64,000 nt of DNA from Hyaloraphidium curvatum SAG 235-1 (taxonomy: Eukaryota; Fungi; Monoblepharomycota): contig JAIVFI010000031.1 of assembly GCA_025558095.1 (NCBI GenBank), forward strand, positions 372,001 to 436,000, written 5' to 3'. The notes under the pieces were generated by a model. That model was not told where the DNA came from and ran no database searches. It saw only the letters and a program-made list of their open reading frames with translations. The translations under genes and the position numbers were made by a program. Below are positions 15,752-61,157 of the stretch, piece after piece; position 1 is the first letter of the stretch, and the number at the start of each line of letters is the position of its first letter.

Positions 15752-18422
15752 ATGTCCGACTCCGAGGAGGACGGCGGCGGGCCGCACGCCAACGGCGGCC
15801 CGCGCGGCGCGGCGCAGGACCCGCTCGCGCGGCCGCACTCAGTGCCGCCGACGCCGGTCTCGCACGGCCCCGCGCCGCCGTTCCGCGCGTTGCCGGCCAA
15901 CGACGCCGGCCTGCTGATCTCGACGGTGTCGCCGCCGCCCGCCGCGCCGCCCGCGGAGGCGTACGCGCCGCCCAAGTCGGCGCACGCCGCGCACGGCCAC
16001 GAGCTGCTGGTCGCGCTGCTGACGTCGGCCGACATCGAGGGCAACGTGACGCGGCGCAGTGCGGGGAGGCCGCACGCGGAGGTGTCGCGCGCGACGTTCG
16101 CCGACGAGGAGATGGTCAACTACCGTGGGATTCGCGTGCCGGGACACGGGGGCGCGTCGTCTGACTCGGCTCGCCCCACCGACAGTCGACCACCTCACCG
16201 GCAGCAGCCTCGCGCAGCTGCGCACCGAGTCCGAGGCGCTGGCCGAGCAGGCCTTGCACATCCAGGAGGAGCTCGCGCGGCTGGCCTACACGGACTACAA
16301 GACCTTCCTGGACTCGCACGCCGCCACGGCCTCGCTGCGCTCGAGCTTCCACTCGGCCGCCGAGGGCCTGGACAAGGCCGTCGCGGTGCTCCCCGAGCTC
16401 GAGGCCGCGTCGGCCGACTTTGTCCGGCAGGCCTCGGCCGTGCTCGCCGAGCGCGCGCGCACCTCGCTCGTGCTCTCGCACCACGCCACCCTCCTGGACG
16501 TGCTCGAGATCCCGCAGCTGATCGACACCTTCGTCCGCAACGGGTACTACGAGGAGGCCATGGACCTCAAGAACCACGCGGCGCGGCTGGTGGTCCGCTA
16601 CCCCGGCGTGGCGCTTCTGCAGCGCATCGCGGCCGAGGCCGAGCAGTGCGGCGCCATGATGCTCGGGCAGCTCGTGAACCTGCTGCGCGGGGACGTCAAG
16701 CTCCCCGTGTGCATCCGCGTGATCGGGTACCTCCGCCGCCTGGAGGCCTACACCGAGCACGAGCTCAGGGTCATGTTCCTGCGGCAGCGGGACGGGTTCT
16801 TCCGCGCGCAGCTACCCGCGCCCGCGGGCGACCCGGCCGACTACCTGAAGCGGTACATCGATTCCTCGCGCGAGCACTTTTTCGACATCATCACGCAGTA
16901 CCGCGCCATCTTCTCCGACGGCCCGGCCTCGGGCCTGGCCCCGTCGGCCGCGCTGGACCCGGACGTGGGCTCCAACACCGTCCTCTCGACCCTCTCGATC
17001 CTCTCGTCCTACGTCACGGGGGTGCTCGAGGACTTTGTGGGGCAGCTCGAGGCGCACCTCCCCCGCGTGCGCGACGTGCCGCAGCTGGGCTCGCTGCTCA
17101 CGCAGACCATGTACTACGGCATGTCCCTGGGCAGGGTGGGGATCGACTTCCGGCAGTGCGTCGGGAAGCGGTTCGAGCGCGCGGTGGGGGACGTGGTGCT
17201 GGCGCAGATGCGGGCGGGGTGCGACGCCTTTGTCGAGTACGTCGCCCGGAGCGGGGTCGAGGCCGTGCAGCCGGTCAAGGTGTCCGGGGGGGCGGGGAGG
17301 GGGGAGGCGAGCGTGTACCAGGCGCCGGCGGTGCTGGTGGCCTGGCCGCCGCTGGGCAATCTGGTGGGTCGCCAGAGGCGGGAAATGCGTTTGCGGGGCT
17401 GACGCTCCGCGGCAGGTCAACTACTACTTCACGGCGTACAACGCGCTGCGCATCTGCGCGCCGCTGTCGCAGATCCGGCGGCTGGCCAAGGAGGGCATCG
17501 AGGACGGCCTGGTGCGGGCGGCTGAGGCGCTGCGTGCGGTCGGGAGCAGGTGCGTGGACGGCCGGCGCCACTTCCAATCCGATCTGACGCCATCCTCCGA
17601 TCCGTGCACAGGCTCGACCCGACGTCCACGCACCACGCGCCGCTGATCGCCAACCACCGGCAATGCGCGCGCCTCTTTGCCGAGGTCGCGGTGCCGGCCA
17701 TCTGCGACGGGTTCGAGCGCGGCGTGTACGCGGGCTCGGTGCCGTCGACGGGTGCGGTGGACAGGACGCGGTGCGCGGAGCCGCTGGCGGAGCTGCTGCC
17801 GCGGGCGGGGGCGTCGCCGGTGGCAAGGGAGGGAGGGGCGGAGGCGCCGGCTGAGGAGGGGCGGGGCAGCGTGGAGCAGGGGCGGGCGAGCACGGAGCAG
17901 GGTCGAACGAGCGTCGATCAAGGCAGACGCAGCACGGAGCAAGGGCGTGCGAGCATCGAGCAAGGCCGGCCCAGCACGGAGCAGGGGCGTGCGAGCATCG
18001 AGCAAGGCAGGCCCAGCACGGAGCAGGGGCGTGCGAGCGTCGATCAAGGCAGGCCCAGCACGGAGCAGGGGCGTGCGAGCGTCGATCAAGGCAGGCCCAG
18101 CACGGAGGAGGGCAGGGTCAGCGCAGAGCAAGGGAGACCCAGCGCCGAACATGCACGAGCGAGCGCCGAGCACTCCAGGCTCAGCGTGGAGCAGCCCCGG
18201 ACGAGCGTGGACCGGCCTCCCGCCGCGCCGGCTTCGGAACCCGCTCCCAGGACGAGCACCGAGCAGGCGCCGAGGAGCAGCACCGAGCAGCCCCCGCGCC
18301 TGAGCGCCGATCGCGCGGGCAGGGAGAGCTCGGAGCAGGGCCGGGCGAGGACGGCGCCGGGGCAGCCGAGCGCGGACGGGGGACCGCGGGCGAGCACGGA
18401 TTCGCACGGCGAGGGCGCATGA
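15752..18422 (+). CDS. COG8: Conserved oligomeric Golgi complex subunit 8 (Dor1) with C-terminal heptad repeat tail
   Basis: LLDVLEIPQLIDTFVRNGYYEEAMDL, LPVCIRVIGYLRRL, FFDIITQYRAIF, LLTQTMYYGMSLGRVGIDF are hallmark Dor1/COG8 motifs. Confidence 0.93.
17859..18215 (+). repeat. Coding 21-nt tandem repeat (~17 units of GRxSxEQ, 42-nt higher-order unit)
   Basis: Directly visible: GRGSVEQ GRASTEQ GRTSVDQ GRRSTEQ GRASIEQ GRPSTEQ ... PRTSVDR. Confidence 0.95.
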
Positions 18423-48425: not shown

Positions 48426-48581
48426 CCAGCTACTCGATCAAGGATCCTCATCACTGTTTGACGACGATCGCCTCGCCGCCGTGCCCGAGTGCGGCACCCG
48501 CTTCCAGCTACTCGCTCAAGGATCCTCCTCGCCGTCCGACGACGATCGCCCCGCCGCCGTGCCCGAATGCGGCACCCTCTC
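48426..48581. repeat. Diverged 78-bp tandem duplication spanning a stop codon
   Basis: ccagctactcg(a/c)tcaaggatcctc...gtgcccga(g/a)tgcggcaccc starts at both 48426 and 48504. Confidence 0.9.
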
Positions 48582-49835
48582 CAAGAGACCCGCGTTCTCG
48601 TCCGACCTCCGCTCCGCATACAGCCCCGAGCTCGACGTCGGCAGCGGGATCGCCGGGCCCAGTGCGGCCGGCACGGGAGGCGCCGACGCCTCCGCAAGAC
48701 CCTCCTTGTACTTGGCGTAGGAGTAGAGGAGCGAGTCGATCATGAACACCCACGCGGCGAGGAAGTTGACGGGCTGGCAGTAGTCCTCGCCCAGCGAGCT
48801 GAACGGCGCGCAGAAGTACGAGTCCAGGGCGTACAGCGCCGATCCGACCGCAAAGAGGACGTCCCCCCAAAAGTCGGCGTCCCAGATGCGGACGGACGCG
48901 AGGCAGCCGCGCGGCGGGGCAGGATCCGACGCCGCGCCGGCCATGAGGTACACGGCCGAGTCCAGGAGGAAGGTGTGCGAGGCGGCGATGTCCACCCAAA
49001 AAAGCGTCCACGGGTCGACGGTCCTCGGCCAGGCGAACCAGACCACGAGGGCGTTCCAGGCGTAGAGGGCGCTGCCGAGGACAAAGAGGATGCCGCCGAG
49101 GAGGAAGCCCAGGTGGGGTTTCGTCCGGCGCGGACGGCGCTTCCCGTGTCCGTGGAGGTCCTCGGCCTCGGAAGGGTGCGCGTTGCCGGCTGGTCCAACG
49201 GGCTGGAAGTAGGCGACAAAGGAATCGAGCAGCCCGTTGAAGATGAAGAGGAGGGCGGCCACGACGTTGCCGTGCAGCACCAGGGCATTGCCAAAGTCCG
49301 TCACGGGCGAGCCGTTAACGGAGGCGCTTCCAATGACGACATACATGAAGGAGCCGAGAACAAAGAGTGTGTTAGAGTAAACGGAGAGCTGGGCGGTGGA
49401 GGCCTCGATTTCGTCAAAGTCCATGGCGGCGTGCACGGGTTCCGCCGACAGGAGCAGTGCGCTCTCTGCGAGGCGAGAGTCCGATTGTGCGGCAAAGAGC
49501 GCCGGCGAGGCCGCGCGCGAGATTTGCGAGGACGGGTACGGCGAGGGCAGCGGCGTCCACTCGGCGTCCAGCCGCGGCGAGGAGCGCTGGCCAGCCGGCG
49601 AGGATTCTGCGGTGCCCGGCGCTGGCTGTAGAGCGCCGCCGTCACGCCACAGCGGGGAATGCGCGGCGGGCGAGGGGTGCGCGGAGAGCGTGGGGTTCGC
49701 AGCGCCCAGCGGGGCGAGCGCGGCGCATTGCGGCGAGCGGCGGTCGACCTCCTCCAGTGTGGCGGTGTGCGACGCCGCTCTCAACTCCGCAGTGCCGCTG
49801 CCGGCCAACGCCGCGGACTCCGCCGGGGTCGACAC
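48516..49835 (-). CDS. Multi-pass membrane protein with repeated YrhK-like helical pairs
   Basis: Three similar units (NTLFVLGSFMYV / GILFVLGSALYA / DVLFAVGSALYA), each followed by a helix ending in FxxNG/DS; true start may be ATG 49424. Confidence 0.65.
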   Translation of the reverse strand: MSTPAESAALAGSGTAELRAASHTATLEEVDRRSPQCAALAPLGAANPTLSAHPSPAAHSPLWRDGGALQPAPGTAESSPAGQRSSPRLDAEWTPLPSPYPSSQISRAASPALFAAQSDSRLAESALLLSAEPVHAAMDFDEIEASTAQLSVYSNTLFVLGSFMYVVIGSASVNGSPVTDFGNALVLHGNVVAALLFIFNGLLDSFVAYFQPVGPAGNAHPSEAEDLHGHGKRRPRRTKPHLGFLLGGILFVLGSALYAWNALVVWFAWPRTVDPWTLFWVDIAASHTFLLDSAVYLMAGAASDPAPPRGCLASVRIWDADFWGDVLFAVGSALYALDSYFCAPFSSLGEDYCQPVNFLAAWVFMIDSLLYSYAKYKEGLAEASAPPVPAALGPAIPLPTSSSGLYAERRSDENAGLLERVPHSGTAAGRSSSDGEEDP

Positions 49836-50529: not shown

Positions 50530-51765
50530 CTAGATCTTCGCCTTGCCCTCCCGCCCCGTCTTCACTCCCATAGCCTTGACGTCCTGGTTCAACCGCTGAG
50601 CACCGCCCCCCGAGGTAAGGTAGCTTCCGCCATCAACAATAATCGCCTCGCCCGTGACGTAGCGCGCGGCGTCCGAGGCCAGGTACAGCCCGCTCAGCTC
50701 GATGTCCCTGATGGTGCCCATCGAGCGGAGCGGGATGTTCTGGATCATGGCGTCCTTCTGGGCCGGGGGGAGGAGGCGCGCGATGCCCTCGGTGTCGTCG
50801 ATAGGGCCGGGGGCGATGATGTTGGCGCGGATGCCGTAGCGCCCCCCTGCAAGCGGTCGAAATCAGCAAATGATCGCCATTGGCGCCCGTGCCACGTACA
50901 CTCGATCGCGAGGGTGCGGATCATGGCGTCGATCCCGGCCTTGGCGGCAACCGGGTGGACCTGCATCGCGGTGCCTGGCAAGCGGGAGGCATCAGCAAAC
51001 GGCCCGCGGGCCCGACGGCTCCACCGACCCTGGTAGTGCATCGTCGCCGAGATGGCGATGATGTTGGCGTTGCCCGACTTCTTCAGGTACGGGAACGCGG
51101 CCTTGCAGGTGTTCCAGGCGCCGAGGAGGTCGATGTCGATGACGGTCTTGAACGCCTTGTACGAGAGGTTCTCGGCCAGGGCGAGGAAGTTGCCTTTGGA
51201 CCCGGGATCAGCGGATCAACCCCCGCAGCCGGGCGCCGCAACCCACCCGCGGCGCCGACAATGACGATGTCGATCCCTCCGAACTTTTCCGCCGTGGTCT
51301 TCATCGCCGCCTCGATGTCCTCGGGATTCCTCACGTCACCCGCGATGGCGAGCACCTGCGCCCCGGGGATGTCGCGCCGCATCTCGTCGGCGGCGGCATC
51401 GAGCTTCGACTGGGTGCGGGAGAAGATGGTGCACTTGGCGCCGTGCCTGGAAAGAGGGAATGATGGGGAAAGGGAGGGCGTCGGTGGCCGGACGGAGGAC
51501 GTTGGAGACGAGCTTGATCACCTCAAATATGCCTCAGTCATCCCTGCAGGAGGGTTTGAGCCCCAACGTCGGGAGCATCGGACACGGCAAACGTACCCTT
51601 GCAGATGCCGGAGCCACCACCGGTGCTTTTGCGCGCGTGCAGGGGGTCAGGCAAGTCCGGGAACCGGGACCGGTCCGGCGCTCACACAAAGGCGACCTTG
51701 CCCTTGAACAGGTCGGGCGAGAAGACGCTGGTCGTCGGCGGAGCAACTTTCAGGCCGCCGGACAT
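50530..51765 (-). CDS. SPS19: Peroxisomal 2,4-dienoyl-CoA reductase (SDR), PTS1-like AKI
   Basis: VFSPDLFKGKVAF, GAAGNFLA, AFKTVIDIDLLGTWN, AAKAGIDAMIRTLAIE, NIIAPGPIDDTEG, YVTGEAIIVDGG. Confidence 0.88.
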
Positions 51766-51784
51766 CTCGACGGGTCTTTGCGGG

Positions 51785-52080
51785 GGAGTAGGACGGGGGC
51801 CTGTTCGAAACGTCTGGGATGCGATCGGGCCGGCGGCAAGTTTGTCGCGCGTTTACCCGGCCGCAACACAACACAGGCCATTTGTCCTTTCTCCGGCCGA
51901 AACGGCGGAGCACATGTCATTTCTCGGCCGTCTTTGCCGCCAGCAGGGCGGAAACGCGATCTTCCCACGATCCGTTGACGCTGCGGTAGGGCCGTCCTGG
52001 TTCCGAAGGTCAGCTCCGACGCCCCCAAGATCCCGCAACCCCAGTCCACCTGTAGGAAGGATCTTTGTCCAACACCATCC
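51785..52080. repeat. Direct repeat copy A (duplicate of SDR last intron/exon plus spacer)
   Basis: Aligns by eye to 54075-54380; shared blocks ctccggccgaaacggc, ctttgccgccagcagggcggaaa, gcgatcttcccacga, ccgttgacg, gcggtagggcc. Confidence 0.92.
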
Positions 52081-52197
52081 TTCGTCAACTTGTTTTGAAG
52101 AGGAGAAGATTCGCGGCTACATTCATTGCGCCGTGCTTAATACCGCTCAATACCAAGACAAAAAGATCTCACATACAGCGTCCCAAATCATCGCAAC

Positions 52198-54027
52198 TTA
52201 CATCCTACCAATCTCCTCCGCCACTTCGATGAACGCCGGCCTGTCCGCAGCCTCTTGCGCCCACATCCTCTGCATCAGCCCCCACATTGCGTTGCTCACA
52301 CGGTTTGGCCGGGTTGGCCTCTTCTGCTCATTGCACACCTTTTGCATAATCTGCCAACCAATTAACCCCAGCAACGGTATGCGCGTGGGCAGCATGACCT
52401 ACCGCTATCATCATCATCCCCTGAAATGGATACTCTCCTTCGCTCGTCACCTCGAAGGATACCATGGCAAATGCATATCCATCAGCCGGGGCCTTGAGCT
52501 TCTGGCCATCCCAGAGCTCGGGGGCCATAAAACCCGGGGTGCCAGCGGGGGTGCCGGGGTTGATGCTGGATGAACTGGAAAGATGCGTGCGAATCCTGGA
52601 GAGGCCAAAGTCGGCAATCTTCGGGACATCGTGGTCTACAGGGTGGGTATCGACATTTGAGCTGAAGGCAGATGTGCAGGCAGTGCTTGACCAACCAATC
52701 ATGATGTTGAGTGACTTGAGGTCCCCATGGAGCATGCTGAAGGAGTGCAGGTAGGCCATGCCCTCTGCCACACCCCTGAGGTACTTGAGCCCCATTGCTT
52801 GGTCCCAATCTAGGTCCTCGAGACGGTCTCTAAGATTGCCTCCTGTGCAGTACTCAGAAACCATGAGCGGTGGGTCCTCGCAGAAAGCCAGCAGCGGAAG
52901 AACTGCAAGGGGGATTAAAGTCAATGTGCGCTCCACGGCAGTGACCTCAAAGACCCAACCGTTCCGCTGGGTTAGGCCCTCCCAGACCGCAATTTCGTCC
53001 TTGAACATCTTCATGGTCTTGGGCCCCACAGGGCCCTTGATAGTCTTGACCGCCACCACCGTGGCCCCCCGGAGCTTGCCACGATAGACCTTACCAAACC
53101 CGCCTTCACCAAGCCAGTCTTTCTCCTCGTACTTGACGTCCTTTGCGGTGATGCGCAGCTTGGAAACGAACGCTGAGTCGGAACCCGGGGTCTTGGCAGA
53201 TCCGTGCCCCGAAGACAAGGAGCCAGGAACACTGGGGATCAAAGTGATCTCGGAGACTGGCGTTCTTGCCCCCCCGCCCGGGAGAGGCAATGCTGCAATC
53301 TTCTCCTTGAGCGCGAGCTCCCGCTCCCGGATCTCTAGCTCCTTCATCTTGATCTCAAGCTCGCGTTGCTTGGCCCCGTCTGCAGCTGCCTTGTCCCGCA
53401 CATCCTCGTTGCGATGGTTAGCCCTATGCTGCTCAGCTTCCAGCCGGCGGCCTCCGGGCTGCGGGTTCTCCTGTCGTCTCTGCCCGTTGCCCTCCGCAAT
53501 CTTGGCCTCGATGAGCCGCTTTTCGTTGGGTTTCGCAAAATCGGCGGCCGATTTCCCTCCTTTATTTCGGGCAGTGATGTCCAATCGTTCACAATGTTCC
53601 AGAAGAAGCCTGACGGTTGCATCCCTTCCCGGAGTGACCCTCAGTTTGCAAGCTGTGATCAAGCCCGTGTTCCCGTTACTATCTTTGGCATTTACATCGA
53701 CCCTTGGGTCCGTCAGCAGTAGTTGAACGACGTCTGTATAGGCGTAGAAGCAGGCCACAATGAAACCCGTGCGGCCGAAGCTGTCGCGTTCACATCAACA
53801 CGTGGGTCCGCCAGCAGCACCCGAACGACTTGAAGTCGCCCAGCATAGCATGCATTGTGGAGCCCCGTGCCGCCGCCGTACAAGCCGGCGTACAAGCCGT
53901 CCGGAAGTTCCGCGTTGACGTTGAACTCCGGATCGGCCAACAGTGTCCGCACTCTGGCCACATTCCCCTCTTGGCACGCGTCCCGGAACGCCTTCTCCTT
54001 CTCCTTCGAAGCGCTCGAGATGCTCAT
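52198..54027 (-). pseudogene. Ankyrin-repeat + coiled-coil + TKL protein kinase with a frameshift at ~53785
   Basis: Ankyrin repeats (LLADPRVDVNA); kinase motifs GEGGFGKV, VAVK, HGDLKSLN, DFG, APE intact; frame switches inside DVNA/DSFGRTG with no room for an intron (real lesion or sequence error). Confidence 0.75.
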
Positions 54028-54074
54028 CGCGCTCGCCTCCTCGCACTCCCGACGTGCCGCCAGAGGGAGTATGC

Positions 54075-54380
54075 GGAGTGGGACGGCGCGGTTCGAAAAG
54101 TCTGGGATCGCGGTCGGCCGGCGCAATTTATTAGAACGTCGAGACAGGTCGTTGTCCTCTCCGGCCGAAACGGCCTAGCACACGTCACTTCTCGGTGGCC
54201 TTTGCCGCCAGCAGGGCGGAAAAGCGATCTTCCCACGACCCGTTGACGCCGCGGTAGGGCCATCCTGGTTTGGTGCGCAAGGTCAGATCGGAACGCCTCC
54301 CGAGATCCCGCACCCCAAACATCCGACGATGCCGAGCAACGAACGTACCTGCGGGAAGTATCTTGGTCCATCCACCGTCG
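54075..54380. repeat. Direct repeat copy B
   Basis: Counterpart of 51785-52080; contains the functional SDR 3' end. Confidence 0.92.
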
Positions 54381-55268
54381 ACAACGATACCCTCGCCGTT
54401 GATGAAGCCGCTCGCTGGCGTGCAGAGCCAATAAATCACTTGGGCGATGTCCTCGGCCGTTCCCGCGCGTTTCGCCGGGGTGTCGGCGCCCATGACGTGG
54501 AACAGATCTTGGATTTGAGACGTCATCGGGGTGAGGATCAGCCCAGGGCAGATCGCGTTCACGGTTATCCCGAGGGGCCCGAGCTCCGCACACGCAGCCT
54601 TGGTCACGCCGAGGACGGCGTGCTTCGAGGCGTCGTAGCCGTACGAGCCCGTGGTGAAAAGCCCGGCGACGCTGGCAATGTTCACGATCCTCGAAGTGCC
54701 GTCCGCCGGGGGTCCGACGCCGTCCGGCCGCACGGAGGCGCTCTTGGCAAGGTACGGGGCGCAGGTGGCCATGAACCGCACCGTTCCAACCAGATTGACG
54801 TCGACCACGTCCGCGACGTTCTTCGAAACGACCGCAGGGTCCGGCGCCATCAGGGTGTTGGGACCAGGCCCTCCAGTGACGCCGGCACAGTTTATGAGGA
54901 AGTCGATGGCCCCAAAGGCTTCTGCGACTGCGTCCGTAGTTTTCTGGACCGCCTCCATGTCTCGCACGTCGCAACGGAAGCCCTTCGCCGTGCCTTCTCC
55001 GTGGCACTCATTGATCTCGGCGACGACCTCGTCCACGTTCGAACCGAGGTCCACGACGGCGATTTTGCAGCCGTGGTCCGACAGAACATGGCATGTGCTC
55101 CTCCCAATGCCGCTAGCACCACCGGTAACCAAGGCAACGCGTCCTGGAAGGGCAGGTGAGAGATGGGCGCCCGGGGACGGCGGGAGGCATCTCACCCTCG
55201 ATGGAGTATGAACGCGTCGAAAGACGGCGGCGAGCGGGCGCCGAAGCTCGGACAGGCGGCTCCGACAT
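54185..55268 (-). CDS. Classical short-chain dehydrogenase/reductase (3 exons)
   Basis: TGGASGIG, NCAG, NIASVAG, YDASKH, NAICPG, VDGG; probable in-frame last intron 54265-54348. Confidence 0.9.
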
Positions 55269-58170: not shown

Positions 58171-61157
58171 TCATGCTCGAAGATCGGCAGGCACTTCTGC
58201 CTCCGTTCCCCACGCGACCAGGGACCCGTCCGCCTTGAGCGCCATGGCATAACGCTCCCCCGCAGTCACCTGCACCACCGCGTCCAGGTCCGGAGGCACC
58301 GCCAGCTGCCCCGTCGAGTTGCGCCCCCACGCCGCCACCCTCCCAGTCTCGAGCAGCGCGAGGCTGTACGACACCCCTGCCTCGACCTGCTTGACCTTGC
58401 CAAGGCCGGCGGGCACTTCCCGCTCCCTGAAGAAGTTGAAGCCGCCCCATGCGACCACGGTGCCGTTCGAGAGCAGGGCGAGGTTGTGCGTCGGCGAGGC
58501 CGACACCTGCGCGACGCCCTGCAGCGATCCGGCATAGTCGGCGTCCGACAGGTTGGGATCGCCCCAGCTGAACACCGTCCCGTCCGTCCGCAGCGCGAGC
58601 GTGTGGATCCCCGACGAGGAAACGTGCGCCACCCCCGACAGCCCGTCGGGCACCGTCCCCTGGTCCCGCAGGTTGGAACCCCACGCCACCACCGTCCCGT
58701 TCTCCAGCAGCGCCTTGGCGACCGAGACCTGCCTTACACCGGTCAAGTTCAACGGCAGCATGACCTGCGCCGCCGTCTCGCCCCAGGCGCGCAGCGTCCC
58801 AGTGTCCGTCAGCGCGACGTAGTACCCCGGGCCGGCGCTCAGCTGCTTGACCTTGCCCTGCAGATCCGGGGGCACGTCCGTGAAGTACTTTCCCCAGGCA
58901 CGCACGGTGCCGTCGTGGAACACCGCAGCCGCACTGGAGTAGCCCGCCACGACCTGCTTGATCCGCGCCGTCTCGCTCGGCGCGCAGACCTTGCCGCTGC
59001 CCCTGAAGCCGGCCTTGCACACGCACGTGGCCACGTGATCGCTACCCGTGCACAGCGCATGCGGGGAACACACACCCCGCACGGCGGCGCACGGCTCGGG
59101 CGGGTCACACTGCCCGCCTTCGTCGTTGTTGCCGCAGAAAACCCGCAGCGTCCCATCGGGCATCAGACCCACGGCGTGCACGCTCCCCACCGCCAACTGG
59201 GCCAGCCCCTCCGTGTCCCCCAGCGCCAGTGCTGTGGTCTGCGCGGCGTCGTTGGCGCCCCACGCCACCACCCGGCTCCCCGCCAGCACTGCCGCGCTAC
59301 GCTTCTCCCCGGCCACAACCGCCACGGCGCCCGACACCCCCGGGGGCATGTTGCGCTGCCCCTTGTCGTCGGCCCCGAATGCCACCACAGATCCGTTCTT
59401 GAGCAGCACCAAACTGTGGTCGTAACCGGCCGACACCGCCGCCACGCCTTTCAGACCCTTCGGCACGGTCGCCTTCCCCGAGGGATCCCCGTTCCCGAAC
59501 CCGAACGCCTGCACGGTGCCGTCCCGCATCAGCACCAGCACGTGGTCGTTCCCTGCCGACACCTGCGCCGCGCCGGTTAGGCCCTGCAGCGCCGTCTGCG
59601 TTGCGCGGCGGTTGCCCCACACGTGCACGGTGCCGTTGGCGTCGAGCGCGGCAGAGAAACCGGCTCCGGCTGTAATGTCCTTGATCCCTGGGATGCGTGG
59701 GGGTACCCTGGCAGAGCCGGGGCCTGGGCCCCAGCCGACGAGGTCGCCGGTCCGGAGAAGCGCGACCGTGTGCAGGAAGCCGGCGGCGACCCGAACCACC
59801 CCGCGGAGGTTGGCCGGCACGGTGGCCTTGGTGCCGTTGCTGTAGGTGCCCCAGGCCTGCACGGTGCCGTCGCTCATGACGGCGACGGTGTAGTTGCCCT
59901 TGGAAGCGACCTGGCGGTACAGCGGGCTCGCGGCCAGCAGGCAGGTGCGTCCATCGCCGATGTGGTTGGCGCGGCAGGAGCATTTGGCCCTGCCCTGGTC
60001 GTTGGTGCAGAGGGCGTTGGCCGCGCAGCCGCCGTTGCTGTCCGAACACGGATTGGGCCGGGCGCACTGGCCAAAGTTGGAGGCGCCCCGGCATCCCCAG
60101 AGGAACAGAGACCCGTCGACCATCAGCAATGCGTTGTGGTACGACCCCGCCGCCACGTTGAGCATGGTCGTGCGCTGCGGAAATACGAGCGTCCGGGGCA
60201 CATTGGTCTGGCCGTACGAGTTGTCGCCCAGCACGAAGATCCCCGACGGGTCGTGTGCGCGGACCACGACGTGGCCTTCGCCGGCGGCGATCTGCACCAA
60301 GCTGACGGCCTGCTTCATGGTGAGAGCGATGTAGTAGCGCTGTGTCTGTACGCGGCCGTTCCATAGGCCCCAGACCAGGACCGAGCCGTCGCCCAGGGCG
60401 GCGGCCGAAAAGGAGGCGCCGGCGGCGACGCTGCGCGCGACCGTCACGACGGCGGACCCGTTGACCACCATGGGGCCCTGCAGCTCGCGCGGCACGTTGC
60501 ACTGGCCGTGCTCGTTGGAGCCCCAGGCTGGAAGAGGCACTTGTGAGGGGTGAAGACGTGCTGCGTGCCAGACGACCTACCCCTCACCGTGCCATCGGCC
60601 AGCAGCGCGAGCGAGTGCGCCCTCCCGCCGCCGAGCTGCCGCACGTTCTCCAGCCCCACAGGCACTGTCGACTGCCCTGCCTCGTCCGCGCCGAAAGCCC
60701 GAACCGTCCCGTTCTTCAGGATCACCAGCGTGTGGGCGCCGCCTGCCGCCACGTCGCGCGCATCTCGGAGGCCATCGGGCACCAGCGCGCCTGGGCCAGC
60801 GCCCCACGCGCGCAGCGACCCGTCATTAAACATGGCGACGGCGTGGGCCGCGCCCGCCGCCAGGCGTGTGACTCCCTGGAGCCCAACCGGCAGCAAGTCC
60901 ACGACCGGCCCCGCACCCCACACCCGGATCGTGCCCTCGGCGCGCAAAGCAAGCGTGAATTGCTCGCCCGCTGCCGTCTCCACGAACCGCGAGCCCAGCC
61001 CGTCGCTGTATGCCCTCTCGAGCTCGCGCGCAACGGGCCCGGAAAGCCCCGCCGCGAGGGCCTCGGGAGGCAGCTGGTCGGCCCCGGTGCCGTCGCATGC
61101 CCCTCCCGGCGGCCACGCCGCCAGCAGCAGGACAATCGCCGCCGCCGCCAGGCGCAT
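58171..61157 (-). CDS. Secreted RCC1/BLIP-II repeat protein with two EGF domains (2 exons)
   Basis: Signal peptide MRLAAAAIVLLLAAWPPGGAC; many ~38-40-aa repeats AG..HSLAL..DGTV.AWG....GQ..VP..L.GV; EGF CSDSNGGCAANALCTNDQGRAKCSCRANHIGDGRTC and CAAVRGVCSPHALC..CVCKAGFRGSGKVC. Confidence 0.88.

Follow-up and report, generated by a model that had tools for sequence, protein, structure and literature searches.

Target-site duplications left by transposons and by retrocopies that are mediated by LINEs (long interspersed nuclear elements) are usually 2-20 bp in length, and LINE-type insertion can also yield long target duplications. In Arabidopsis, Woodhouse, Pedersen & Freeling 2010 (PMC2869330) described transposed genes whose flanking repeats, mostly 30-400 bp, are single-copy at the orthologous target and often present at the donor, which led to a circle-plus-recombination model; this model and a long target duplication are both discussed there, and of the nine cases with an identifiable parent and flanking repeats >30 bp, six had the repeat at the site of the parent as well. 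In Drosophila, duplications at inversion breakpoints have a median length of 321 bp and were proposed to arise when paired single-strand breaks leave long overhangs that are filled in before the ends are joined (Ranz et al. 2007; PMC1885836), and genes that were duplicated whole to dispersed new sites are flanked by repeats of 44-433 bp (Yang et al. 2008; PMC2211543), as quoted in PMC2869330. Both plants and flies have provided examples of such transposon-free gene moves, and we describe here a probable case from a new lineage. The window, that is, the whole stretch of 64,000 nucleotides that was analyzed, spans positions 372001-436000 of contig C31 (572.8 kb) of Hyaloraphidium curvatum SAG 235-1, and the best protein matches of the locus are annotated proteins of this monoblepharid zoosporic fungus. 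Within it, an ankyrin-TKL kinase gene lies between an SDR gene and an SPS19-like gene, all on the minus strand, and is bracketed by two diverged direct repeats of the SDR 3΄ end. The bracketed structure is as follows.

54072-54378, minus strand: repeat copy B, the functional SDR 3΄ end plus what is now the spacer upstream of the kinase gene.
52093-54071, minus strand: the insert between the repeats (~1.98 kb), made up of one complete ankyrin-TKL gene with a leader of 44 nt and a trailer of 105 nt.
51782-52090, minus strand: repeat copy A, an orphan copy of the SDR 3΄ end and spacer directly upstream of the SPS19-like ATG.

The two copies showed 75-76% identity overall, with a 113-nt core (51890-52002 and 54158-54270) that was detected at 90% identity in a repeat search. 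When the whole window was compared with itself using blastn, 51785-52041 matched 54075-54316 at 76% identity over 265 columns (E = 1e-44), and this pair was the sole non-tandem repeat of >=50 bp. A search of the H. curvatum genome (31.9 Mb, 55 contigs) found exactly two copies of the sequence. The repeat limits were taken from a global alignment; in the minus-strand orientation of the genes, copy A runs from 52090 to ~51782 and copy B from 54378 to ~54072, and the duplicated stretch measures ~315 bp. In each copy, ~30 nt from the end of the SDR penultimate exon are followed by the last intron and the terminal exon, and then by a spacer that stops shortly before the next ATG. The ATG of the SPS19-like gene (51765) lies ~15 nt beyond the end of copy A, the ATG of the kinase gene (54027) lies 44 nt beyond the end of copy B, and the kinase stop codon lies 105 nt before copy A; both repeats are thus within ~500 bp of the ends of the kinase coding sequence. 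These results agree with the original prediction, which was made from the sequence alone and held that ~300-bp diverged direct repeats flank the ankyrin-TKL gene, that each contains the SDR last intron, terminal exon and spacer, and that one spacer copy sits upstream of SPS19 and the other upstream of the kinase; the repeat content is borne out by both the SDR protein and the alignment.

Gene models follow the annotated proteins P0001, P0111, P0112 and P0114 and references for the single exons. Those of the two neighbouring genes are given below.

54185-55268, minus strand: SDR gene encoding a putative 3-oxoacyl reductase (P0001, 315 aa), with its ATG at 55268 and its stop at 54185.
50530-51765, minus strand: SPS19-like peroxisomal 2,4-dienoyl-CoA reductase gene, with its ATG at 51765 and its TAG at 50530, the protein ending in AKI.

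The C-terminus of P0001 (...WTKILPAGWPYRGVNGSWEDRFSALLAAKATEK) confirms the in-frame last intron of 84 nt in copy B (54266-54349) and the terminal exon at 54185-54265. In copy A, the intron is shorter by ~31 nt, and the pseudo-exon (51917-51997, including its stop) still reads GRPYRSVNGSWEDRVSALLAAKTAEK and then the stop; copy A matches SDR residues 324-362 at 72%. For the last exon of the SPS19-like gene, the best solved relative was 4fc6, human peroxisomal 2,4-dienoyl-CoA reductase.

The SDR search led, via the fragmentary protein P0005, to an empty site in a relative. This site is in L045, a contig of the Logan assembly of run SRR23967301, which lacks the kinase and carries an SDR ortholog, ~230 bp, an SPS19 ortholog on the same strand and, beyond it, the next syntenic gene. 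It has one SDR terminal exon and one spacer, and that spacer is too diverged to align with the window. The SPS19 ortholog showed about 75-96% amino-acid identity by exon, and in a maximum-likelihood tree the window SDR and the L045 SDR grouped together (support 84/92), the C5 paralog (P0002) falling elsewhere. From these comparisons, the empty site is best read as ancestral and the kinase as derived at this locus, in keeping with the prediction that the kinase entered an ancestral SDR-SPS19 junction. Only coding snippets align between the two species, whereas the non-coding spacers of copies A and B align at 70-77%, which places the duplication after the split of the species. The SDR-SPS19 adjacency is absent around the C5 SDR paralog and in Gonapodya, which is uninformative on the insertion. 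The SDR genes of the two species differ in other respects: the branch of P0001 (window 54185-55268) is ~3.5 times longer than that of the L045 ortholog (L045:2324-3467; 0.53 versus 0.15), and the last intron follows ILPAG in H. curvatum, whereas in L045 it precedes GGW.

In the inserted gene, three ankyrin repeats and a coiled-coil linker precede a non-RD (HGDLK) kinase domain, and the features of the gene are as follows.

52198-54027, minus strand: ankyrin-TKL reading frame, with its ATG at 54027 and its TAA at 52198-52200 and with PF07714 and Ank hits (P0111).
53776-53795, minus strand: apparent frameshift between ankyrin repeats 2 and 3, where paralog proteins match frame -2 upstream and frame -1 downstream.
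52330-53170, minus strand: part of the kinase domain that has lost CpGs in this copy only (CpG observed/expected 0.41-0.67, GC 0.56).

The Pfam match to PF07714 was strong (103 bits against a cut-off of 23.1; 1.9e-29), Ank families matched too, and VAVK, HGDLK, DFG and APE are present in the kinase domain of P0111. GT-AG introns lie at 52904-52960, 52637-52696 and ~52378-52399, and these three introns sit where the annotated paralog P0112 also has exon junctions. Because the N-terminus of the insert matches the native start of the paralog P0114, we regard the insert as a whole gene. Residues 7-77 of P0114 match frame -2 and residues 72-118 match frame -1; the ankyrin part would accordingly be out of frame with the kinase part in the assembled sequence, and it is because of this frameshift that the public gene model (P0111) is a 326-aa kinase-only protein starting only at 53347.

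We also compared the CpG content of the kinase domain with that of its nearest paralogs, in which CpG observed/expected values were ~1.1 and GC was 0.64-0.65. The domain contains 45 CpGs, compared with 90 and 99 in the two nearest paralogs, that is, about half were lost, and of its 106 private differences 54 were C>T or G>A, with TpG/CpA in excess. In the ankyrin and linker parts and in both neighbouring genes, CpG observed/expected was normal (~1.1). This pattern suggests cytosine methylation or repeat-directed mutation, acting on the part that is most similar to other family members. The private changes were distributed over codon positions as 29:21:56; since they remain biased toward third positions, less than in the paralogs, selection on the kinase seems to have been relaxed rather than absent. 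With its frameshift and CpG decay, the inserted gene looks partly degenerate, and it therefore fits poorly with a successful dispersal strategy.

The absence of a transposase, long terminal repeats or terminal inverted repeats, which had been noted from the sequence, held up in searches of the insert ends and open reading frames: a repeat search found neither type of terminal repeat at the insert ends, no transposase, reverse-transcriptase or other transposon-type Pfam domain was present in the long open reading frames of the insert, and eight further long open reading frames of the region, on both strands, had no Pfam match. The trailer has no poly(A) tail and ends in a short A-rich AAAACAA. 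A processed retrocopy was excluded, because the three GT-AG introns are retained and a poly(A) tail is lacking.

We then computed Jukes-Cantor distances between copies A and B for each segment. The distance was 0.11 in the terminal exon, 0.49 in the intron and 0.27-0.38 in the spacer (overall, 0.30). This distribution fits one constrained partner for each half, namely the exon of copy B, constrained by the SDR protein, and the spacer of copy A, constrained by the SPS19-like gene. The terminal exon has eight differences in 81 nt, and since five of the eight change amino acids, including W to R at a WPY motif that is conserved in the C5 paralog, Gonapodya and L045, the exon of copy A looks like a relic. 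The spacers also share one short block:

51803-51820, minus strand (partner 54091-54108): 18-nt block ATCCCAGACKTTTCGAAC, with 17 of 18 positions kept in both spacers.

The block is a candidate shared cis-element, no more. As a genome-wide motif the 18-mer was rejected: the genome has no exact site besides the two of this locus, and these together with one match with two mismatches did not exceed the reversed-pattern control.

In several respects the locus resembles the Arabidopsis class of transposed genes (PMC2869330). An ordinary gene sits at a non-ancestral site and is absent at the orthologous site, the repeats near both of its ends are host, mostly genic, sequence that is single-copy in the relative, no transposon is involved, and fast-evolving gene families, kinases included, are affected. 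However, no donor is identifiable here and the repeat exists at the target only, and the host is an early-diverging fungus with intergenic spacers of ~150 bp. As at the Drosophila inversion breakpoints (PMC1885836), a few hundred base pairs of unique host sequence, gene ends included, occur on both sides of the segment (~315 bp versus a median of 321 bp), but those duplications are inverted and accompany inversions, whereas the present duplication is direct and surrounds a foreign segment. The Drosophila duplicates of Yang et al. differ in that their flanking repeats are repetitive or transposable-element copies that mediate ectopic recombination (PMC2211543); the repeat of the present locus is unique local sequence. 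A direct target duplication brackets the insert as in transposon and LINE insertions, but element machinery, element termini and poly(A) are absent and introns are retained.

On this evidence, we consider it probable, with moderate confidence, that a single old, DNA-level and transposon-independent insertion with a target duplication of ~315 bp occurred in the H. curvatum lineage. A complete intron-containing ankyrin-TKL gene would have landed in the ~150-bp spacer between the SDR gene and the SPS19-like gene. Either the target break was staggered, or a repair or replication template switch left just before the SPS19-like ATG and re-entered ~315 bp upstream; through fill-in or repair synthesis, both sides of the insert would then have received the stretch that begins at the end of the SDR penultimate exon and stops just short of the SPS19-like ATG. 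In this way, copy B would have left the SDR gene with an intact 3΄ end and terminator, copy A would have preserved the complete spacer upstream of the SPS19-like gene, and the insertion survived in such a tight intergenic region probably because the duplication preserved both neighbours. Afterwards, the exon of copy A would have drifted (W to R), the ankyrin part of the kinase gene would have acquired its frameshift, and half of the CpGs of the kinase domain would have been lost. The repeats with their content and genomic uniqueness, the empty site of the relative, the lack of transposon marks and the retained introns are observed; the single event, the staggered-break or template-switch mechanism and any promoter role of the copy B spacer for the kinase are inferred, and it is only the position of this spacer that would suggest promoter capture by the kinase.

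Several observations weigh against a single insertion. The exon of copy A is kept somewhat better than simple neutral decay predicts, and gene conversion, use of the exon or some constraint on it may be responsible. The junctions of the insert are too diverged for microhomology to be read; a possible ACTCC repeat at the upstream junction is blurred by the ~25% divergence. The polarity was read from a single outgroup locus, L045, and the structure of the locus and the frameshift from the assembled sequence. In addition, the kinase is more diverged from its paralogs than copy A is from copy B (K 0.30), so that a lost donor or an older origin is possible. In the kinase domain, 23% of nucleotides distinguish the gene from its nearest paralogs, C23 (P0112) and C27, and no donor could be named because dS relative to P0112, the nearest annotated paralog, is saturated at ~1.2; the copy-specific CpG decay inflates this divergence. 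The lack of a donor is the main weakness of the single-event explanation and keeps two-step histories alive.

One such history begins with a tandem duplication of the SDR 3΄ end and spacer, or of a larger SDR duplicate that has since eroded, after which the kinase gene landed at the junction or replaced sequence there. Genes of mobile classes have often entered or interrupted tandem duplications (Woodhouse et al., PMC2869330), tandem duplication is active in the kinase clusters of this genome (C6), and two SDR paralog lineages exist. However, such a history requires a landing point at most a few bases from the junction between units, the relative has a single unit, and one event accounts for the same structure. 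Moreover, a relaxed tblastn search with P0001 and P0002 and a blastn search with the SDR body over 51700-54100 did not find an SDR body upstream of copy A; the only SDR traces in this interval came from the terminal exon (E = 2.5e-9) and from ~10 residues at the end of the penultimate exon. An ordinary tandem duplicate, in which copy A would extend into a whole decayed SDR paralog as the original prediction had allowed, was therefore rejected, as colinear remnants of the SDR body are missing, and two-step histories of this type appear unlikely, albeit worth serious attention. We regard the reverse order as improbable. In this case, the kinase gene would have arrived without duplication just upstream of the SPS19-like ATG, and the upstream region of the SPS19-like gene would have been restored afterwards, when ~315 bp of the SDR 3΄ end and spacer were copied there. 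The greater divergence of the kinase from every paralog (dS ~1.2 relative to P0112) than of copy A from copy B (K 0.30) means that the kinase could predate the repeat, but C>T and G>A changes specific to this copy make up most of the excess, and two events with end points exactly matching the ends of the kinase unit would be needed.

Insertion by a mobile element (a DNA transposon, a Helitron, a Starship-like cargo carrier or LINE machinery), with the repeats as element ends or a long target-site duplication, is highly unlikely. The long target duplications of LINEs and the terminal AAAACAA of the trailer would suit it, but terminal inverted repeats, long terminal repeats and transposase or reverse-transcriptase domains are all missing, the flanks are host gene sequence found at this locus only, introns are retained with no real poly(A) tail, and comparable flanks are absent at 11 paralog loci. 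It is equally hard to credit that the exon of copy A is in use, either as an alternative SDR terminal exon, with the kinase gene nested in a 2.3-kb intron, or as part of the kinase 3΄ end, and that the repeat is under selection. The reading frame, stop and AG acceptor of copy A are intact and the terminal exon is the best-conserved segment (K 0.11), but five of its eight differences alter residues, one of them at the conserved W of WPY, the intron part has decayed strongly (K 0.49, with a 31-nt deletion), and the public SDR model uses copy B only. An assembly or haplotype artefact has a negligible probability: some small contigs do duplicate parts of large ones (identical matches of C48 with C30 and of C52 with C1), but artefacts give near-identical copies, whereas copies A and B are only ~76% identical with several indels, and both lie inside a 572.8-kb contig with unique genes on either side.

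If the single insertion is accepted, the locus provides a clean and datable example, from an early-diverging fungus, of a gene of an expanding kinase family reaching a new chromosomal site without a transposon. It extends the observations made in Arabidopsis and Drosophila to zoosporic fungi, and it offers a concrete locus for the question of promoter duplication. A further suggestion is that a genome with ~150-bp spacers can tolerate an insertion when a long target duplication gives each neighbour a complete copy of the shared terminator/promoter spacer. The locus alone establishes neither a new mechanism nor a family-wide process, and the apparent degeneration of the inserted copy limits its functional importance.

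The original prediction had further proposed a transposase-free dispersal of members of an immune-like kinase family, with capture of host promoters. The ankyrin-TKL family is very large: matching segments in the genome number at least 111 and occupy roughly 70 loci; many members have ankyrin arrays, and others have LRR or different N-termini. Nevertheless, bracketing direct repeats were found at none of 11 paralog loci with 10-kb context, which include the three nearest paralogs and most full-length ankyrin-kinase paralogs, and at none of 29 loci with 1.5-kb flanks. The family-wide part of the proposal was thus not supported, and the visible mode of family growth is tandem duplication in clusters, as in the C6 cluster, where a plain 1.7-kb tandem duplication is seen. 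A circular intermediate had been suggested as well. The A/B repeat was found at the target locus only, with no parent copy carrying it at a donor site; a repeat-carrying circle therefore has no evident source, and nothing points specifically to such a step. A broader scenario would make this locus the one legible case of a recurrent, transposon-free scattering of non-RD ankyrin-TKL genes into tight spacers by circles or template switching, in which the terminator and promoter of the neighbours are duplicated, the newcomer is expressed from the copied host promoter, older repeats are lost to divergence, and CpG decay is the response of the genome to duplication; we regard this as very doubtful. 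A literature search on Hyaloraphidium kinases returned nothing relevant.

Other repeats were encountered at the paralog loci. At least five TKL kinase genes lie at the start of contig C6 (C6:1-25000), and the 1.7-kb tandem duplicate, at 80% identity, lies within C6:8000-17999 (L050) in a segment that holds internal 84-nt periodic repeats. This contig-end cluster looks like a nursery of the family and is possibly subtelomeric. A direct repeat of 895 bp (84% identity, 1.48-kb spacing) occurs at L047:1-2362 (C23:164000-166361), ~670 bp upstream of P0112, and does not bracket the kinase. An 87-nt inverted repeat around the C15 paralog was considered as a terminal inverted repeat and rejected, because it is an inverted fragment of the conserved last coding exon of the family, which sits at the 3΄ end of many paralogs. 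Kinase matches with identical scores were obtained for C48:15380-15844 and C30:59831-60295 and for C52:14759-15961 and C1:548363-549565, which suggests that these pairs are haplotigs or very recent segmental duplicates. Finally, the window contains short tandem repeat arrays at 17853-18211, 48426-48593 and 58443-58713, with periods of ~42-126, 78 and 117 nt, respectively.

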